Below are positions 21,006 through 63,848 of a stretch of DNA of 64,000 bases, in pieces. Location of the stretch: the NCBI GenBank assembly GCA_002189035.1, contig NEEC01000004.1, forward strand, positions 3,410,001 through 3,474,000, given 5' to 3'. The position numbers and the translations under genes were made by a program. Within the stretch, counting starts at the first letter, position 1, and every line of letters begins with the position of its first letter. This DNA is from Utricularia gibba. Its lineage: Eukaryota; Plantae; Magnoliophyta. A model generated the notes under the pieces. It had not been told where the DNA came from and did not search any database. It was given only the letters and a program-made list of their open reading frames with translations.

Positions 21006-23151
21006 TCAGAGGTCTGCCTCCCAATAAGGTGAATCTCTACTGAACAAGCTTCCCAGTTTTACTGGAGAGGGGTTGTCGTGAGCTGATAGCCGTGAAAGGA
21101 TTAGGCGGGCGATGTTCTCTGCAGCCACGGCACTTGTCTCGATGGTGCTAGCAGCGTTCTCAAAGGCATTGATATAGTAGAGATGTTTCCCATCTAAGAT
21201 GAAGGGAGCATACTCCTCCGGTGCATGGTAATGAGGATAGGCACCCCAGTTGATTCTGATGGTCTCCTCTCTTACACTGCAAAAGAAGAGAAACAGTTCA
21301 GAAAAATGAAGACACATTTTTCCTTGTATGTATGTGTGCATGCCATTTTATCTTGTACCTAAACGCATCGTCCAGCAAGGAGTCCAGCATAGGTTGCCGG
21401 GAGAATATCTTGTATGTATTGTCTTTCTCATGCTGCTTAAGGATGCTGATGCTTGTGAATGGTATATCAGCAGATTCTAGAGTGCCCACCAAATCGGGGA
21501 TGTCTGAAGAAGCATCCAAATGAAAATATGCCTGATCAAGAAGCAATGAAAATTTCAGTAATAACTCATAGAGCATGATCCGATAACATGATATGTTGTA
21601 CTCACCGGATTTAATAGTCCCTTAACGAATGTTGCATGTGTATGTTGTAGCTTTCGGGGAGGCAATGATATCTCTGGAGCAAAATGGATGTTAACCTCAT
21701 CCAAGGGTGTAGCGACCACAGCTATATCACAGTTGTAGCTGTTCCCTGTTGATGAATTCATCTGGTAGAAGTCTCCTAGGAAAGATATTGATTCTATTTC
21801 CTCATGAATATGAAGCTCGACGTCCGATCGATTGATCAACCCAGCAGCCAGCTGCCAGTTTCCCCCTCGACAGCCCATAAGCCACTTCCAGACCCAGCCA
21901 GAGAGACAGCACCAGCAAGGCCACTGATGTTCACACTCTGCCCATAATTTATTCTCGTAATGACCTGAAGAGATTAAATGGTGATGATACCAAGGAGGGA
22001 GAAACCGTTATCTAGGAAAATAAAAAAGAATATCTTACAGTAACAAGCTCTTGAATGAGCAAAGGACTAAATCGAAGTTCCATAGATGCCTCTCTTAATG
22101 TTGTCTTAGTCAAATTGTGAAGCCCTGCCCAATGAAGCATTCCTTCCACGGTATCAAAAACAGGACGGATTTTAGGACTTTCATAGTATCTCAGGAAATC
22201 ATTGACTGTCACCTACAGTTAACAGACATAGCCATATCATCACCAAGAACTACAAAGTAAAATCGAATACTCATAGTGTATGACCAAAACACATATTCTG
22301 TCACCTGGGTATTTAAAAATGCTAACAAACACATCAATCTTGATGTACTACGACTAGGAATGAGCATCTCAGCTGCACAATCAGTAAGTTCATGAAGAGG
22401 TAGAAAAAGAAAAGAATAGTCTTCATGATTTGCATGTGAGCAGCATCATTTAACCAAGACTTTGATCTATACAGGCTGAAATATTTGCACATTCATCGTT
22501 TGATCGAAGCTCATGCAAAATGGAAACAGATTTTACATTAGCTAGATACTCGAGCCCAAAATATCGAGAATTCCAGGTATGATCAATGGCACCAAATACG
22601 GGTAGCGAATAAAGACCCAAAGGTTGAGGGGTATGTACCTCGATGAATCTGTTCATCCGCAAAAGAGATAGGAAACCATATCTCAGCATCAGCACAATTG
22701 AATTAGCAATTGACACCAGTGTTTTGATAATCCACAACTTGGAGTTGGAATTGATAGACTTGTAGACAAATTTCTTCCCATCCCAAATCCCGAGCGACAG
22801 AGAATCATCCGCGTGCTTAGGGTATTTCACTTTGAGGTCAAGATACTTGGTAAAATTCAAGGCATGGTAGTTCTTGGGATGCAGGATGGAGCCTCCGGCC
22901 TCGAAAGTGTCCCCTGCTATGGTGACCGTGGCGGTGCGGCCTCCGACGACAGCGTTCCGTTCAAAGACGGTAATCTTCCCTAGTACTCCGGGTTCCGAGT
23001 ATTGCCGGAGAAAATGAGCTGCGGAAGCGCCGCCGATGCCACCGCCCACTATGCAGACCGTGTGGAGATGGGCGTTGGAGAACTGAAGCGGGAACAGAGC
23101 AGTAGACAGTAAGAGGATGATGGTCACACTCAGCCCTCGGCCTTCCTTCAT
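21006..23151 (-). CDS. FCLY: Farnesylcysteine lyase / prenylcysteine oxidase; 5 exons (23151-22639, 22212-22039, 21964-21606, 21531-21359, 21276-21006); apparent -1 frameshift in exon 3
   Basis: Signal peptide, then FAD motif VCIVGGGIGG, FEAGGSILHPKNYH, VITRINYGQSV, GGNWQ, FENAASTIETSAVAAENIARL. All junctions are GT-AG. Confidence 0.93.
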
Positions 23152-51015: not shown

Positions 51016-54000
51016 TCAAAATAACCTATTTACACTCGAGTGTCCCGAACTTGTTGAGGCGCTTTCATCCACACGCTTGATGAATGAGTCTACTTCCTGT
51101 AGCAGTTGTGTCCTCCAGTGAGACCTCTGCTTGTGACGCCGTGGGCGCGACAGAGCAGACACCATGCTGAATAGAAACCGGCGGACGCCGGCGGCGGCAT
51201 CCTCTGCGCTTTCTGCTGCTCTATCAGCATCATCCTCCCTGATGATATCTCCATTCTGGACATCATCATCATACGCACGTCTCCGCCAGGCCTGCAAAAC
51301 GCTATCCAGAATCAACGGACGAAGCAAAGAACATGCAAGGTGTGCGCTTGTCTGTCTCACATGGAAAAGTCTGCAAAGCTCAGAAATATGTGCGGAGTTC
51401 AGATGCCCAAGTTCCATTAGTCTTCGGAATATGATCACCAACTCGATGCTCAGGCTGCTAGGAGTCATGTTCTTGATGATGTTTCTGACGCAGGAATCAC
51501 CAAACAGCAGGATGATCCATCCAGGGACTTCACTCAACTTCATGAAGGCAGCTGCAACGCCTAGAGCAGGCTCGTAGTGAGTGTTGGATGATTTCGGTGT
51601 CAGAGTTGGAGTGACTAGATACATCACAAGCTCTTCGAAGACCACACGCAACCAGATGTCATGTTGGGTTATCAATGATGTGTTTTCCAGATCCTTCATG
51701 GAAAGCAAATATGATAGGCATCGAGAACAATTCATTGCAACTCTGGTATCACTGTAGAATATCATGCCTCCAAGAACAGATGAAATAGATAGAAGATAGC
51801 CATCTTTGAATTTCAGTTCAGATGTCTCTGTGTGTGATATCCATGCAAATAGTTCCACGAGGCAAGAAGATGCAACTAGTTTGACTGATGGGGGCCAAAA
51901 TACAACAGCTTGCATAATTCATGGACACGAATGCAAATATTGCATAAAGGAGCCATGGCAACTTCCTCATCAACGAATGCTTGGAGGTCAACAACATCTG
52001 ATAGGACAGCTCTTAAGCTGTGACCCAATGAAAGCTACTTGAGGATAAAGGAAAACGACAATAAAAAAAAGAATATTCATAATACCTTCTTATGGAGAAA
52101 AAGAGTAACACGAGAAAATGAACGAGAACTTCCCCTGATCTTGCACCCTTTTCCCCATTAAACAAAGTAGATCCCTTTGATAATGCATCACAAACAGTAG
52201 AATCAACAGCCACTGCCAACGACGAATTCAGAAAGATGGTTTTACACGCTTCTTTTAGCACCCCTGCAGTTGAATGGTGCAAAATCAGAGAAAGGACCCC
52301 AGTTGCTACGGAAGCTTCTTCATTCCACCCGTGTGAACTCGCATTTGAAAACATGTATTCCAACAACTGCCGAGTCGATATATAATAAAAAATAAAAATA
52401 AAAATAAAAATAGAAAAACTACTTGCATGAATAGGAAGAATACAAGGCAAAAGTCGCCACCTTTTTTAATATCCCGATCCAAGATCCACTATTGGAGATC
52501 AACTTAGACTGGACTGATTTTAATAAAATGAACATAAACTGAGACGTGGCTGCAAATAACTCTTGGAAAGAAGATAATGAAATGTTAACAATGTCACCCA
52601 GCACTGCATCAATACCATGCATAAAGAAACGATCAGCAGCACCTGGAGCAATGTCAACTATACTTTTGCATATTTTGACAACCGAAATTATCTCATAATT
52701 TTGGTTAGCTTCTTCCAATAGATCTCTCAATAAGCATACAAAAATAAATGCTCCGAAGTTGCCATCTGATCTAACCAACTCAGCAACTACATCCAAATCC
52801 ACTTCTTTAACCGCTTTAAGGCAATGTTCTCCATGAATGCCAACTGTGTTGCATTTGCAAAAATTCAAGATCTGGGAAGATAAGGGTAGGCATAGTTTTT
52901 CTTGTTGCATCATCCATCTCAGTGATATGAAATGGATCTTTGAAGAAAATAAATCCCAGTCCGCTGCATACAACAGCTCAAAAAGTGTACTTTCAGCTTC
53001 AGGGCTATATGGTATTTGGCAACTCGCCTCTGCAAAACCCCTATACAGCCCATAGAGATTTACTATCACGTCTGCTGTGATGACGTTTGAAGCATCACGG
53101 AGGAAATCACTCAAGTTCAGTAGAATAAATTGCTCCAATGAAGCTAGCACCAAGTTGTCATCAGCAACCCTTCCAAAAAAGAAAGAAATTGAAAGCTTCG
53201 TAATTAACAGAAGCGAATGGCATACGAGATGTTGTAGTAATATTAGCAAGAAAATATACCTGTCATCATAAAGTGAACTTAAATAGAGCAGTAAAAGGAC
53301 TGCTGATTGGCAAGTGTACAGTTCTAGATTATGATAACTCTTCTGACCGAGAAGGAATAGTAAATCTTTAGGGTCAGATGGCAGATGAACAGCCGCATCC
53401 TTAATTGTTTTCCCATATTCAGAACCCAGAAGCACATCTGTAAGGGAATTGAAACTCAGATAAACCATTAATTTCATTTTATTCGAGGGAAACAAGCCCA
53501 AACATCCAAAGGAAACACTAAACCACGACGATGAAACTACATCCTCAGCAAAGCTCTTAGTATGAGTGTTGGAATCTTGAACCAGCATGAAAATGAGAGT
53601 TTCAATCAGTCCCAAGGCAAAAGCCTCCTCTTCCAACTCATTTACTTTCAGAATGAACCAAGGTAATATCTTTAATTTGAAGATATTCAAAATGAAAGGC
53701 TTTAGTTCACTCACTGAAGAGGTAAGGCATACGTTTTCTAGCCCATATGCATAAGCTTCCTTCAAAAGGTACAGAGAGTGCAAAATTTGGTCCATGGTTA
53801 CAAAAGCACATTTCGTGCATGTTGAAACAACAGACGCCAATGTGTCTTTGATTACTGCAACCAAGCTTGAATTTCCATGAGACGATGTGCACTTCATGAT
53901 AGCAACAAGCAGTGAACAGGATAGACTGAATGTCTCGGGAAGAATTTCAATATTGTTACTAAACATTCCTGCCAAGATGCTGCTTATTTCTTCACTTGTG

Positions 54001-56354
54001 CTTGAAGACACCAACCCCGGACTATTCAATACAAAACTTAAAACAAGCTTCAACAGAGGGCAGTGCATAGGGTGCAAAGAAATAGTAGCTACATAATGCA
54101 GGATGGGAATCAGAGTTGAGAACCCTATAGCAAGTCTTGGTCTAAAGGATTGTTCAGCAGAAGATAACAGAACAAGAAGCTGAATTGCAGAATTGGCAAT
54201 TGGATCTTTGTTTCCTAGATATCAACAATACAGAAAAGGTAAAAAGAAAAAGATAGTGAAAGAATACACTGTTAACATGCGCATAAAACAAATTGAGTAT
54301 CCATAATAGAAATGAAGCGGAAGAAATTTCAAGGATTATCAATCAGACAGTATCGACTAACAAGTACCCATTACATTCAAAAAAGTTTGTTATTCACAAA
54401 TTCAGACTCATAGTAAATGATAGGTAAGTGGGCATTTGATATAACAATAATTGTTTGATACCACCAGGAAGAGATTATGAGCAGCATCTATTTGATACAA
54501 CAATTACAGAAAACACAGCACTTATTGAGAAAAATGGACTAGCACCAGGAAAAAGCTGGGCTGGGAAAAATCTTACTGATTACATTTGTAAGACACTTAC
54601 CAGATAATCTCAGTACTTCAAATATGTAATCTGCAACATCCTCCTTTATGAATACATTAAGTTCATTCTCTGAGGACTTTGCCCCAGATAGGTACATAAA
54701 CACTAAGTCCAGCATGGCTGTCTGAACTTTAGTGTCAGAAGAAAGGAGGGGCCCCTTGACTGCTTCTGCAAACAACACATCCAAATGGCGTCCATCCATG
54801 TCAGATTCTGTCATTTGCGTGAAATTGCCACCAACGAAGCCATCTATACTCCCGGAAGTTTTTGAGTTTCCACTCTGAAAGAGCCCCTTCCTAGCCAATA
54901 CCATTAGAAATGCTGCAAGACAATAAGAAGTTGTTTTAATAGATACGTAAGCACAAGGATGACCTACATGCACATTTTCAACTTCATCATGAAATAATCA
55001 ACAAAGAAATCTCCCACTTAATTCTAGGATGCAAAGTGATATTTGCCCTGTCGTCACTCATGAGTAGATGAGAGAAATGAAAGTTTCTTATGTGTTTAAC
55101 GCTGAAAAAGATATCATGCTTCGAATAAATGAGTAATGCCGGAGAAAGAAAAAGATCGTTGGACTGAGATTTCTGAACAATATAAAATAAAAGATCAAGG
55201 AGAAGAAATTAACCGATGCAATTGAAGCGAACATCATCACTTTGGCTTTTCACGAGGATTTCAAGTGATAGTTCGAAAATCTTAGGGAAGTATGATACGA
55301 AGCTATCTGTGGCACTATCATCCACATATGTGAAGCACATGAGTGATAACCGATACAAGACAAACAAAATCTCCCCTTGAATCTGATCACTACATTTCAA
55401 TGGAATTAAATGTATAAGCATTGCTTAAGGAAACAAAGATTAACAACTTACTCAAACATTAGATTCACTTACTTCGACAACTGGAGGCCGGTAACAAGAC
55501 TGCAAAGGAGGCCATCTTTGTTTTTTATAGAGTTGTACGCATCAAAATGATCACCTTCCTCCAGAAGGACCCCAAAGCAGTGGATCTGCGATCCGAGATA
55601 TGATATAACAAACATGGACAGAGAAATAACAGTGGTGTAACAATTACTTATTGTTCGCAAGTTGCCATCGCTGGAGTCAATGATATTCACTTGACTATCA
55701 TCTCCATCAATTTACAAATTCGAAAGGAACCCTTCAACACGGCTGATGCAGTAGGAACACAATCAATGTCGTGGCAAATAATTAACAATCATCTCCCAAC
55801 TGCCCAAATCTTAACAGTCTAGTTATGCATAAAAATACTCCCATTGCAAAAGCAATACCAAAGCAATACAAAGACGAATAAGAAAGAGAAACCATCCGTA
55901 AAATTACCATGTAAAATTGACGACGGCTCCAACCCAACGAACCACTAGAAAGCCAATCCGAAACTCTAGCTACGAATTCCTTGTAAATTTCCGAATTTCC
56001 GTTGCAGTTGGAGGCATCGCATAAGCGTTGGATCATTTCGATGGTTTGCTTAGCGATAGGCTCATCGTCGAAGTTGGATAAGACATGAAGAAGAGGAGAA
56101 ATAAGTAGATGAGAGTGCATGGCGAGAAGAGAATGGAGGAAGTGGGGCTGGAAAAAGGCTTGAGAAAGCTGCGATAGAGCGTAGGAGACATGCACGGTGG
56201 GCGATTTCGGGTTGTTCAGCAGATTCGAAAAGCAGAGGAGGCAGATGCTGCCGCCCTCCGCCGTGGGAATGACGAAAATGCTCCGGTGGCCTTGACCGCA
56301 GGTTTCCGGCGGCATCGCCAGCGGTGATTGGCCGGCACCCTCGATAGAGTACAT
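51016..56354 (-). CDS. PRD1: PUTATIVE RECOMBINATION INITIATION DEFECT 1 (meiotic DSB factor, MEI1-related), multi-exon
   Basis: CGQGHRS....AEGGSICLLCFSNLL.NPKSPTVHVSYALSQLS, LSSGSLGWSRRQ, GEILFVLYRLS, KSQSDDVRFNC resemble the Arabidopsis PRD1 N-terminus. Long downstream exons end at 51016. Confidence 0.92.
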
Positions 56355-56479
56355 CTGTCCCGCGTGAAAAAACAAAAAAAAAAAAAGGGCAGAACTCCTC
56401 CAGTATGGGGGCGGCAGAGGAACCACCTGATCATTAGAATTAGAAGCAAGGTGGTGGTATTAGTGTCAGGTGCATTAAG

Positions 56480-57040
56480 TTTGCACTCTAACCTATTTTC
56501 AAATTTTGTTTGAAAATTATATAATATTTATCTAACATTTTCAAAATACTTTACGTTAATATTCGATTTATAAAATAAAACATAAAAAATAGAAATACAT
56601 AAAACTTAATCTTTAAATTTTCAAATCATAATACTAAATCTGAAATTTAAAAATTCTATAGTCTAAAACTTAAATCTTAAATCTTAAATCCTTAAATATT
56701 AAATCGTAAAAATAGTCTAAACTTTAAATCTTAAACTCTAAAATTTAAATTTAAAATCCAAAACTAAATCCCAATCATGAAATCCTAAACACTAAATAAG
56801 TAACCGTACAAAATTGTGAAACCTTAAACCCTAAATCATTAATTGTAAAAACTAATCATAAATTATGAAAACTTAATATATAATATTCCTAAGTTATAAA
56901 TACTAAATATTAAACTTTAAAATTGAACCCCTAAATTTTAAATCCAAAATTATTATTAATAACATAAAAACCGAAAAAACCATAAAAATAGGGTAAAAAA
57001 AGGGTATATTTTAGGGAACAACTTTCAAGATTCATATAAA
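56480..57040. mobile_element. AT-rich non-autonomous element remnant with TAAACCCTAAA-like subterminal repeats (MULE/MITE-like)
   Basis: Reiterated TTAAATCTTAAA / AAACCCTAAA motifs at 56600-56950 in the PRD1 upstream region. Termini not resolved. Confidence 0.4.
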
Positions 57041-57233
57041 TTACTGGTGTTGGTGACAAAATCGACCAAAATTATTTAGAAGATTGTCTCCGTACATATC
57101 ATTGAAGCAGGAAAAATGCATTGGTTTGAATGTTGAAATGGGGGTGGTCGTAAAATCCGCACACGAAGAGCAAGGAATCAGGGGCATTGATAAGGATTCT
57201 CCCCACACAAGGCAAGGCAGGTAGCTCCTCTTG

Positions 57234-57240
57234 TATAAAT
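57234..57240 (+). promoter_or_regulatory. TATA box of the candidate peptide gene
   Basis: TATAAAT about 42 nt upstream of the ATG at 57282. Confidence 0.5.
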
Positions 57241-57281
57241 TTCCACACCCCGGAGGTGTATTTCATACATATTTGATCTCC

Positions 57282-57741
57282 ATGGCCAAGACAGCTGCAG
57301 TTGTTTTCGCAATCTTGGTGTTCATCATGGCGGCGCTGATCCCCAAGGTGAGCTCTGTTTTCATGAGAATGAGAATCACTCTTCTTTCTCGTCGTCTATG
57401 TAATCAGATCAATGTGCCACTTGATAGATAGATAGATAGATAGAGGGATCAATTTTTCTGTTTTCTTTTCTTTTCGTTTATACGGAATGCGGGGTTTCAA
57501 ACCCAAAAACATCTCCCTCCCAGATGAGTAGGAGAGCAATGCAATTAGGGCGTAGATCACTGAGATATTGGTGGTGGTGGTTGTCTTTTTTGAAGGTGCG
57601 GCTGCGGCTGCGGCAGCATCATCGCCGAACAGCAACAGGAAGATTTCGGGGCCGGTGGGAGAATCGAAGCGTGTGATTGAGATCCACCCAACTCCCTACG
57701 GGACGCCGTTCCCATGGCCACCAGTCCACCACCACCCCTGA
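57282..57741 (+). CDS. Candidate small secreted peptide precursor, 2 exons (57282-57347, 57596-57741), RGF/GLV/CLEL-like C-terminus
   Basis: Exon 1 MAKTAAVVFAILVFIMAALIP (signal-peptide-like) with donor AG|GTGAGC. Exon 2 after TTTTTTGAAG encodes GAAAAAAASSPNSNRKISGPVGESKRVIEIHPTPYGTPFPWPPVHHHP*. The join needs +1 C in the CCCC run at about 57340-57344, or an alternative acceptor at 57555. Confidence 0.6.
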
Positions 57742-58651
57742 TCCTGACCTGAACAACAACTTTCCCCCGTCGAGCTGATTACAATAAAGTTCCTCTGTCG
57801 GGGGATTCGCATCGCCGTCTTCTTCTGAAAGCGCAGAGCCCTGTGCTGGCTGTCCTTGCTTTCCTTATCCTTAATATTAATATGTTCAGGTTGTGACTTG
57901 TGCAACAAGAACATGCGTTTCATCAACATCCAACCATAACTTAAATTATCAAAACTTGATATATAATATTCCAAAGTTATAAATACTAAATATTAAACTT
58001 TAAAATTGAACCCCTAAATTTTAAATCCAAAAATATTATTAATAACATGACAAATAGAACAAAATGCAAAGAATAACTTATTTTCCGGTAATTTACAAAT
58101 CTTTGTTATGGTCAATTTTTATTGTTCTTAGATGTTTAATGAAATACATGAAAACTTGTAAAAGGAAATTAAGGGGATGAGTGACATTAAAATGGGTAAA
58201 TCTTAACTCAATATATAACTAGTGAAGATCATCACAGCCACAGGCCATACCCCTCCCACTTATACTTGTGTGTAATCTTAATTTTTTTTCCTTTGATTTT
58301 TAATCTAAATTTACCAAAAGAGCAAAATGTCAGTTATGCTTTTTACAATAAATTAATTATATATTCTTGAAATTACATAACATCAATTTATTCTAATTAT
58401 CTTTTTCGAAAAAATATTCAGTCATATTTTATTTATGACACCGCTAATTTTTAAATTTTGATAGTATTTGATTTATAGGGATAGAATAATAAAATTGGAT
58501 TTAAAAAATTACACATGTTTGGTAAATAATTAATTATATATTGTAGGTGAATATGGGTATATTCTGTTGGATATTGTTTTTAAAAAGGAAAAAAAAAAGA
58601 ATCAGATATATACGATCTCACATGACATAAATAGGGCGCCCCCCGTCCCGT

Positions 58652-59114: not shown

Positions 59115-60978
59115 ATGGCCGGCGGTGGTGGCTTTGGAGACCTTCCTCAGGCCGGGAAAGGCTATCCCGGAAACTTGACCCAGTTCGTCATCGTTACTTG
59201 CGTCATTGCTGCCATGGGCGGTTTGATTTTCGGCTACGATATTGGGATTTCAGGTTCCTTGTTCGTTTCTGTGTTTCGGTTATTAAAGGGTACACAGTGT
59301 CGATTGGCGGATTGATTTTTTCGATTACAGGAGGTGTAACGTCGATGGATTCGTTTCTGAAGCAGTTCTTCCCATCGGTGTACCATAGGGAGCAGGCGTT
59401 TACCGAGGATACTGTGCACGCTGTTAATCAGTACTGCAGATTCGATAGCGTTACCTTGACGCTGTTCACTTCTTCGCTGTACTTAGCGGCGCTGGTATCC
59501 TCGCTCGTGGCCTCGACGATTACTAGAAAACTCGGGAGGAAGCGGTCCATGCTTTGCGGTGGCTTGCTTTTCATGATCGGTGCCTTGGTGAATGGTTTCG
59601 CTCGTGCGGTATGGATGCTTATCACTGGCCGGATTTTCCTTGGGTTCGGCATTGGTTTCGCGAACCAGGTAAAAAGCCAAGTCCGGATCTTGTTTTATCG
59701 TACATGCTGTTGCGAGGACGTCCGAGTATCGGCGCTTTTTTGTGTTTTGTTTTTTCGTTTTGGAATCTGATATGTGAAATGCGGGGTATCCCTTGGTTCT
59801 GCAGTCCGTGCCACTGTATCTCTCAGAGATGGCACCATACAAATTCAGAGGAGCACTCAACATTGGGTTTCAGCTCTCCATCACAATAGGCATTTTGGCT
59901 GCAAATCTCTTGAACTACGGATTCGCCAAGATCAGTGGGGCTGGGGTTGGCGTCTGAGTTTGGGAGGCGCCGTGGTGCCGGCCCTCATCATCACCTTTGG
60001 CTCTTTGATTCTCCCAGAAACACCGAACTCGTTGATCGAACGCGGCGACGTAGAAGTTGCCCGAGAAAAACTGAGAAAAATCAGGGGCGTCGTTGATGTA
60101 GACCAAGAGTTCAATGACTTGATAGCAGCGAGTGAAGCTTCAAACAAAGTGAAGCACCCATGGAGAAACCTTCTTCAGAGACGATACAGGCCCCATCTCA
60201 CAATGGCGATCGCCATCCCATTTTTCCAACAGTTCACCGGCATAAATGTCATCATGTTTTATGCTCCTGTTCTTTTCAGAACAATTGGGTTTGGAAGCGA
60301 GGCCTCTTTGGCATCTGCCGTCATCACCGGCGCCGTCAACGTCTTCGCAACCGTAGTCTCCATATACGGCGTTGATAAATGGGGAAGAAGGTTCCTGTTC
60401 CTCGAAGGAGGCATTCAAATGCTGATCTGCCAGGTATCCATCCAACATTTACACCCATTTCATTGATTAGACAAATTCCCAGAAAGCATTTGAAATCCAA
60501 ACTCGTGTGTTGAATTCACTCACAGATCGTGGTGGCGATCTGCATCGGCTTAAAGTTCGGGATCAATGGGAACCCAGGGGATCTACCCAGATGGTACGCC
60601 ATTTTGGTGGTGCTGTTCATCTGCGTGTACGTTGCAGGGTTCGCGTGGTCATGGGGCCCTCTCGGGTGGTTGGTTCCCAGCGAGATCTTCCCTCTGGAGA
60701 TTCGATCTGCGGCCCAGAGCATCAATGTGTCAGTGAACATGATCTTCACATTCATCGTGGCCCAGGCCTTCCTAACAATGCTGTGTCACATGAAGTTCGG
60801 ATTGTTCTTGTTCTTCGGCTTCTTCGTGTTGGCGATGACGTTCTTCATCTACTTTTTCCTGCCGGAGACGAAGAACATTCCGATCGAAGAGATGGCGGTG
60901 GTGTGGAAGCAGCACTGGTTCTGGTCGAGGTTCATGGCGGACGAGGGTGGGGACCTGGAGATGAACGTCAAAGCATGA
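59115..60978 (+). CDS. STP1: Sugar transport protein (MFS hexose/H+ symporter, STP1/STP12 clade); 4 exons (59115-59253, 59331-59668, 59805-60433, 60526-60978); apparent -1 frameshift in exon 3
   Basis: [96 protein letters not shown]. Confidence 0.93.
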
Positions 60979-62858: not shown

Positions 62859-63848
62859 ATGCCTTCCCTTCCTGAGGAACCCCTCCTTGCCCCAAACGCA
62901 GATCGCTTCTGCATGTTCCCAATTCAGTACCCTCAAATCTGGGAGATGTACAAGAAAGCAGAAGCCTCCTTCTGGACGGCGGAGGAGGTCGATCTGTCTC
63001 AAGATCTCGCTCACTGGTACTCTCTGACGTCTGACGAAAAGCATTTCATCAAACATATTCTAGCTTTTTTCGCCGCCTCCGACGGGATCGTGCTCGAAAA
63101 TCTCGCTGCCAGGTTCATGAAGGAGGTCCAGGTTTCGGAGGCTCGCGCGTTTTACGGCTTCCAGATTGCAATTGAAAACATCCACTCTGAGATGTATAGT
63201 CTTCTATTGGAAACTTACATCAAGGATTCTGAAGAAAAGAGCAGGCTCTTCCGTGCTATTGAAACCGTTCCTTGTGTCGAGAAGAAGGCGACTTGGGCCC
63301 TTCGTTGGATCGATGGTTCTGAGTCGTTCGCAGAGAGGCTACTGGCTTTTGCCTGCGTGGAAGGTATATTTTTCTCGGGAAGCTTCTGTGCAATATTCTG
63401 GTTGAAAAAGAGGGGTCTGATGCCCGGGTTGACCTTCTCCAATGAGCTCATTTCCCGGGATGAGGGTTTACATTGTGACTTCGCTTGCTTGCTCTATAGT
63501 CTGCTTAAAGTGAAGCTTAGTGAAGAAACGGTGCACGGGCTCGTGGCGGATGCAGTGGATATTGAAAGGGAGTTTGTTTGTGATGCGTTGCCGTGCAGGC
63601 TGTTGGGAATGAATTCAGAGTTGATGTGCCAATACATAGAGTTCGTGGCGGATAGATTGTTGGTTGCATTGGGGTACAAGAAGCTGTACAATGCACAGAA
63701 CCCCTTCGACTGGATGGAACTCATAAGCTTGCAGGGGAAGACAAATTTCTTCGAGAGGCGAGTTGGTGAGTACCAAAAGGCTTCTGTTATGTCGAGCTTG
63801 AATTCAAATGCAGATGCCGATGACTTCAATTTGGATGAGGACTTCTAG
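62859..63848 (+). CDS. TSO2: Ribonucleoside-diphosphate reductase small subunit (R2), TSO2 type, intronless, 329 aa
   Basis: Single ORF with [71 protein letters not shown], terminal LDEDF. Confidence 0.96.

Follow-up and report, generated by a model that had tools for sequence, protein, structure and literature searches.

The locus at 57282-57741 of the Utricularia gibba window, by which we mean the whole 64-kb stretch of DNA analysed here, is best read as belonging to a lineage-restricted family of putative precursors of small secreted peptides, expressed and present in several copies in a eudicot genome, a reading to which we assign a probability of roughly 0.68. The gene family is real, expressed and present in multiple copies, and in sister copies of the locus it is spliced at the predicted sites. 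Its coding part is held constant between copies while the untranslated regions (UTRs) diverge. The original prediction had named a new lineage-specific peptide family as one of its two interpretations, and this one gains support from the spliced sister contigs, the coding-specific conservation and the lack of relatives.

Direct reading of the sequence and a scripted frame check placed the ATG of the peptide gene at 57282 on the forward strand, at the head of a two-exon layout (Table 1). The donor, AAG/GTGAGC with its GT at 57348-57349, is a strong site, and the acceptor is T-rich, reading TTGTCTTTTTTGAAG with its AG at 57594-57595 (in a second form, TTTTTTGAAG, last base 57595). GC content is 40% in the intron versus 53% and 63% in the exons. 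Both the GT-AG intron and the GC-rich second exon that had been proposed were found at their places in the window, and the first exon is, by inspection, hydrophobic and signal-peptide-like as described. The open reading frame (ORF) at 57568-57741 holds GAAAAAAASSPNSNRKISGPVGESKRVIEIHPTPYGTPFPWPPVHHHP ahead of its stop. This exon 2 ORF is GC-rich; its C-terminal end reads HPTPYGTPFPWPPVHHHP, closed by the stop at 57741, and its product contains the tail motif HPTPYGTPFPWPP. The ORF list presents the gene solely as two separate pieces, in agreement with the claim that the ORF track missed it owing to the split. Within the 3' UTR lies an AATAAA at 57783-57788, and a sister copy differs from the window in this UTR by 5-nt and 4-nt indels.

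Table 1. Coordinates of the peptide gene, its parts and the flanking repeats in the window
Feature	Position	Strand	Description
122-bp direct repeat, upstream copy	56859-56979		In degenerate AT-rich TAAATCTTAAA / CCCTAAA-like repeats
TATAAA	57234-57239	+	43 nt upstream of the ATG
Exon 1, coding part	57282-57347	+	66 nt, 22 codons; encodes MAKTAAVVFAILVFIMAALIPK
C4 run	57341-57344	+	C5 in expressed sister copies; the absent base shifts exon 2 out of frame
Intron	57348-57595	+	248 nt, GT..AG; junction used in sister-copy spliced contigs
Exon 2, coding part	57596-57741	+	Sister-copy frame reads (G)AAAAAAASSPNSNRKISGPVGESKRVIEIHPTPYGTPFPWPPVHHHP; stop at 57739-57741
3' UTR	57742-57880	+	At least 139 nt, extent from a sister-copy cDNA contig; about 12% diverged
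122-bp direct repeat, downstream copy	57942-58063		Identity of 92.6% to the upstream copy, 1083 bp away

Public RNA data comprised nine runs from three studies, four of which were aligned, as Logan contigs, to 57100-58000. In one study, two samples (X1 and X3) each yielded a contig in which 57344 is joined to 57603 through CAAGG, a joint that corresponds to the predicted GT-AG sites on the forward strand. The RNA mapping that the original prediction had proposed as a check has in this way yielded spliced contigs, for sister copies: relative to the window, both contigs carry variants at 57203, 57221 and 57248, and their 3' UTR is strongly diverged. In both, exon 1 ends in ATCCCCCAAG, with five C, and exon 2 starts G-TGCGGCTGCGGCAGC, with one 6-nt GCGGCT unit fewer than the window, the Ala run of these spliced sister copies being shorter by the same 6 nt. 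Their frame continues across the junction as LIPQ/GAAAAASSPN. The X3 contig begins at the equivalent of 57165 and the X1 contig at about 57223-57230. An unspliced X1 contig covering 57200-57365 carries the same 5' UTR variants together with the extra C (behind 57340). X1 also has contigs that match the window exactly (57100-57256 and 57484-57608), which are shallow and show no splicing. All spliced contigs derive from this one study, and none of them is assignable to the window locus itself. A sample from another study (X4) contains yet another copy, whose intron differs, and in that sample exon 1 of a copy is matched by a contig of very high word depth (841), word depth on contigs being a poor measure of abundance.

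Common to both spliced contigs are the foreign letters TGCAGTGCTCCGATATACGGG, ending in GGG, at their loose 5' ends (57165 and 57230). These letters look like a cDNA template-switch or 5' adapter left in the contigs, a reading that would place the 5' ends of the sister-copy transcripts upstream of TATAAA. The TATA box predicted at 57234 is present as a motif, but it falls within the 5' UTR of the spliced sister-copy transcripts, which appear to start upstream of it, and a promoter role is unsupported because the spliced contigs run through it.

The comparison between copies sets the coding part apart from its flanks. Relative to the window, the 481-nt X3 contig shows 0 substitutions in 187 coding nucleotides (57282-57344 and 57603-57726), against 3 substitutions in 86 nt of 5' UTR and 15 substitutions plus 3 indels in 123 nt of 3' UTR (57727-57849). 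If the coding part changed at the pooled rate of the flanks, zero coding changes would have a probability of 5e-8, and at the lowest of the flank rates one of 1e-3, figures to be read with the caution that Logan contigs may thread between near-identical copies and that the zero count could be inflated by this. Indels measure 6 nt and 3 nt within the ORF and 5, 4 and 3 nt in the non-coding parts. Other copies carry silent changes at 57308 (TTC>TTT) and 57615 (GCA>GCG) and a non-silent one at 57647 (TCG>TTG, Ser>Leu). The Pro-rich tail is the same in two copies as far as PPV; the X3 copy then terminates as PPVGHP versus PPVHHHP in the window (C>G at 57727, A>G at 57728 and a 3-nt deletion). The conservation includes synonymous sites, a pattern that gene conversion would fit as well as selection.

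The window copy, as assembled, leaves the sister-copy frame by one base. Exon 1 is 66 nt long and ends in phase 0, and exon 2 from 57596 must be read from 57596; the codons of the sister-copy frame lie at 57598, 57601 onward, and those of the peptide quoted in the original prediction at 57595, 57598 onward. The junction proposed for that peptide, 57347/57596, is therefore one base out of frame. A scripted translation of the window spliced at this junction gives a product of 48 aa that reads IPK-VRLRLRQHHRRTATGRFRGRWENRSV up to its stop (in another rendering, IPKVRLRLRQHH and, further on, RSV before the stop). The quoted protein requires exon 2 to start at 57595 or 57598, neither of which is preceded by AG, and in the frame check of the window no canonical GT..AG pair built on the two strong sites yielded this protein. 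Other in-frame GT..AG pairs for the window copy need weak sites, and the junction of the cDNA contigs was preferred to them. The quoted frame is regained only by adding one base to exon 1. The sister contigs read CCCCC at the position where the window reads CCCC, and they therefore restore it. The predicted junction and the predicted product of about 70 aa hold in this sense for the sister copies, which are spliced there and encode some 68-70 aa, but not for the window as assembled, in which the junction is out of frame and the product stops at 48 aa.

Were the C4 run real, the window copy would be a genuine frameshifted pseudogene encoding at most a 48-aa product, a putative signal peptide with an Arg-rich out-of-frame tail, and only the sister copies would be functional. 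In favour of this, young peptide families, tandem or dispersed, often include broken copies; splicing the assembled window at its two strong sites loses the frame; and every spliced contig bears sister-copy variants, the contigs identical to the window being shallow and unspliced. We nevertheless hold this outcome to be unlikely, if the strongest of the alternatives, since the copy is otherwise intact, with its ATG, both splice sites, a full ORF and a stop, and matches an expressed copy without a substitution over the 187 coding nucleotides. We favour an assembly slip over a real frameshift, at about 2:1, as the origin of the missing C; C5 is known from the sister copies, and none of the window-identical contigs covers the C4 run. 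No further one-base losses were found in the conserved neighbours in the window, the small chain of ribonucleotide reductase (RNR) and the sugar transporter; the other large ORFs of the window have no Pfam match that could serve as a frame reference.

The peptide gene is bracketed by the two copies of the 122-bp direct repeat, which may mark the duplication unit of the peptide family, and telomere-repeat-like short repeats (CCCTAAA-like) occupy 56590-56980 and 57970-58035. Searches of the window itself by blastn and tblastn returned no paralogues. The upstream neighbour, on the reverse strand at 55782-56426, is a GC-rich ORF of 214 aa with no Pfam match and with an A13 run inside it at 56369-56384. 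Downstream, on the forward strand, an apparently intact three-exon sugar transporter spans 59198-60978, its three ORFs covering positions 17-122, 167-334 and 335-452 of the Pfam Sugar_tr profile. It is followed at 62859-63848 (forward strand) by an intact, intronless gene for an RNR small chain of 329 aa with a full Pfam match. The best public relatives of this RNR small chain are 88-89% identical and belong to Sesamum, Tagetes, Castilleja and Nelumbo (Lamiales, Asterales and Nelumbo); the exact protein is not on record in protein collections. On the reverse strand, 51016-54077 contains ORFs of 552 and 299 aa, with neighbours of 144-145 aa on the same strand and no Pfam match, which may represent an unclassified gene or a mobile element. 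An exon at 22450-23151, also on the reverse strand, encodes an FAD/NAD-binding amine-oxidase-type N-terminus (NAD_binding_8, Amino_oxidase) and is part of a larger gene.

The predicted precursor shows the layout of a small secreted peptide. The exon 1 product begins with the n-region MAK, followed by a 17-residue hydrophobic core with a mean Kyte-Doolittle hydropathy of 2.9; the c-region then consists of P-(K/Q)-G and a run of seven Ala, in which Ala-x-Ala cleavage sites seem possible by inspection. In the sister copies, the ORF joins this signal-peptide-like exon through IPQ/GAAAAA to SSPNSNRKISGPVGESKRVIEIHPTPYGTPFPWPPV(HHH/GH)P and the stop, giving about 68-70 aa. The precursor of about 70 aa is free of Cys and ends in a tail rich in Pro, aromatic residues and His, and the basic sites that had been suggested upstream of this tail are present in the exon 2 product as the dibasic pairs RK and KR. 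A length below 120 aa, a Cys-poor composition, a conserved Pro-rich C-terminal peptide and upstream basic sites would all suit a precursor of the small secreted, post-translationally modified peptides of plants, and for the sister copies transcription and splicing were found as well.

We propose that the N-terminal signal peptide would take the precursor into the ER and would be cut in or after the Ala run, at a site of the Ala-x-Ala type. A Cys-free propeptide of about 40 residues would then be secreted, and trimming at RK or KR may leave a Pro/His-rich C-terminal peptide of 20-30 residues bearing hydroxyproline. We do not expect the Tyr to be sulfated, as it lacks a preceding acidic residue. 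Our working guess is that the peptide would signal or serve in defence in the apoplast. Judged by its sequence, the locus would encode an orphan putative secreted Pro-rich peptide precursor.

Homology searches were run exon by exon with the separate exon products. Pfam gave nothing relevant (0 families) for the two exon products and the out-of-frame exon 2 product, and a word search with the 48-aa exon 2 product against 5.8 billion proteins returned 0 candidates. A HMMER search of 1.84 billion representative sequences with the 40-aa mature part produced two matches, P0001 and P0002, both of which were rejected. P0001 (1621 aa) consists of a 146-aa TMEM55-type unit concatenated 11 times head to tail and is presumably an artefact of assembly. 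Its E-value was summed over the repeats; a single unit reached a BLASTP E of 0.008 over 19 residues that do not lie in the Pro-rich tail. Concatemer library entries of this kind inflate E-values through such summed repeats. P0002 is a WD40-repeat protein and a spurious repeat match. The ESM Atlas, searched by features, gave no usable match. Metagenome contigs gave 0 matches to a degenerate DNA pattern for PYGTPFPWPP, and none of the 600 pattern matches from a protein-guided metagenome scan was confirmed. Rfam returned 0 matches over the whole 64-kb window, and a full-text literature search for the peptide motifs turned up nothing relevant. This absence of relatives is consistent with a young lineage-specific family; it is also partly a data limit, because close relatives of the plant seem to be absent from protein collections and orthologous loci unobtainable.

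Several other readings concern what the product does or whether it exists. A secreted Pro/His-rich peptide could act directly in the apoplast without a receptor, as a cell-wall, metal-binding or antimicrobial peptide rather than a signal. Its Cys-free tail, with many Pro and aromatic residues and the His run HHH, would suit such a function, as would the word depth of 841 over exon 1, which is more in keeping with abundant effector peptides than with hormones, insofar as depth reflects abundance at all. The His run varies, however (HHH versus GH in a sister copy), which speaks against metal binding by that run, and we regard a direct role of this kind as rather improbable. Less probable again is a new lineage-specific apoplastic signalling class with the core HPTPYGTPFPWPPV, which would be aromatic-rich, non-sulfated, probably hydroxyprolinated and perceived by a dedicated receptor kinase. 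It is very unlikely that the real transcript is a spliced non-coding RNA, or carries a chance ORF that goes untranslated: the ORF is short, lacks homologues and contains low-complexity Ala and Pro stretches, but conservation between copies is confined to it, indels are in frame within it and out of frame beyond, and a well-placed ATG is followed by a canonical signal-peptide-like segment.

The other interpretation in the original prediction was a non-sulfated RGF/GLV/CLEL-like ligand, with PYGTPFPWPPVHH as an RGF domain binding RGI-type LRR receptor kinases. In RGFs, Asp-Tyr at domain positions 1-2 forms the TPST sulfation site, and the free C-terminal His-Asn is read by the RxGG motif of the receptor. 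Across 203 RGFs, Asp1, Tyr2 and the Pro of the second half are conserved in the 13-residue domain, of which DYAQPHRKPPIHN and DYKSPRHHPPRHN are examples; the precursors measure about 79-182 aa, and RxR and RxGG motifs are found in the RGI receptors (PMC8708909). The spacing of Y2, P5, P9, P10 and H12 in RGF1 and GLV1 does coincide with that of the window peptide, and the precursor layout is alike in its putative signal peptide, the lack of Cys and the Pro-rich C-terminal domain. When the last 15-20 residues were shuffled with their composition preserved, the pattern Y..P...PP.H arose in only about 0.5% of cases, a rate that is not negligible for a motif chosen post hoc from a Pro/His-rich tail when many peptide families could serve for comparison. 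P9 and P10 are present as WPPV and kept in the sister copy, which carries little weight in a tail with 40% Pro, and 'H12' is Gly in the expressed sister copy (PPVGHP before the stop).

The remaining features of RGFs are missing. Position 1 is Pro, as the original prediction had noted in remarking that the DY sulfation site is lacking (HPTPYGTP, with no acidic residue beside the Tyr), in contrast to Asp1 across the 203 RGFs. RGF domains end in His-Asn (or His-His) at or near the C-terminus of the precursor; here no Asn is present and residues follow the 13-mer (VHHHP before the stop in the window, VGHP in the sister copy), and with HP following there is no free His-Asn. The precursor has a signal-like N-terminus and measures about 68-70 aa versus 79-182 aa. 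Sequence searches linked it to no protein family, RGFs included, a weak negative, as kinship between peptides this short is difficult to trace by sequence. With Pro1, no terminal Asn, a variable 'H12', a short precursor and no detectable kinship, membership of the RGF/GLV/CLEL family was rejected, and an RGF-like ligand is the least credible of all the readings considered here.

We return to a lineage-restricted family of putative secreted peptide precursors as the preferred reading. Gene finders miss small peptide genes of this sort; here the coding sequence is split by an intron, and a single base was possibly lost in a G/C run of the assembly. For the plant genome, the locus adds one more unannotated, expressed small peptide family. 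If the peptide proved bioactive, it would represent a new ligand family; on present evidence, we regard it as an ordinary orphan peptide gene of modest interest.

Among known peptide systems, RGF/GLV/CLEL (RGF1-11 in Arabidopsis; PMC8708909) resembles the locus, with its putative export signal, in having an N-terminal export signal, a Cys-free precursor, the presence of an intron and a C-terminal Pro motif on the scale of 13 residues. It differs in that the window peptide has no TPST site and two residues after the motif, and that its precursor is shorter than the RGF range. CLE, IDA, PIP and CEP are Pro-rich modified peptides perceived by LRR-RK subfamily XI, with the signature ends PNPLHN (CLE), SKRHN (IDA) and GxGH (PIP and CEP). 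The likeness to these families, compared by description and by the blank Pfam scan, lies in the putative signal peptide, the variable middle, the Pro-rich C-terminal domain, the likely hydroxyproline and the possible subtilase basic sites, whereas the window peptide lacks their ends and has bulky F/W in its core. Hydroxyproline-rich systemin (HypSys) precursors, which give rise to defence peptides, are about 150 aa long and carry several peptides each. Compared by general description, the window precursor is shorter than these and shares no sequence similarity with them, but it is like them in being small, predicted to be secreted, lineage-restricted and fast-evolving, and in yielding, on our model, a Pro-rich, Cys-free peptide on the scale of their 18-20 residues.
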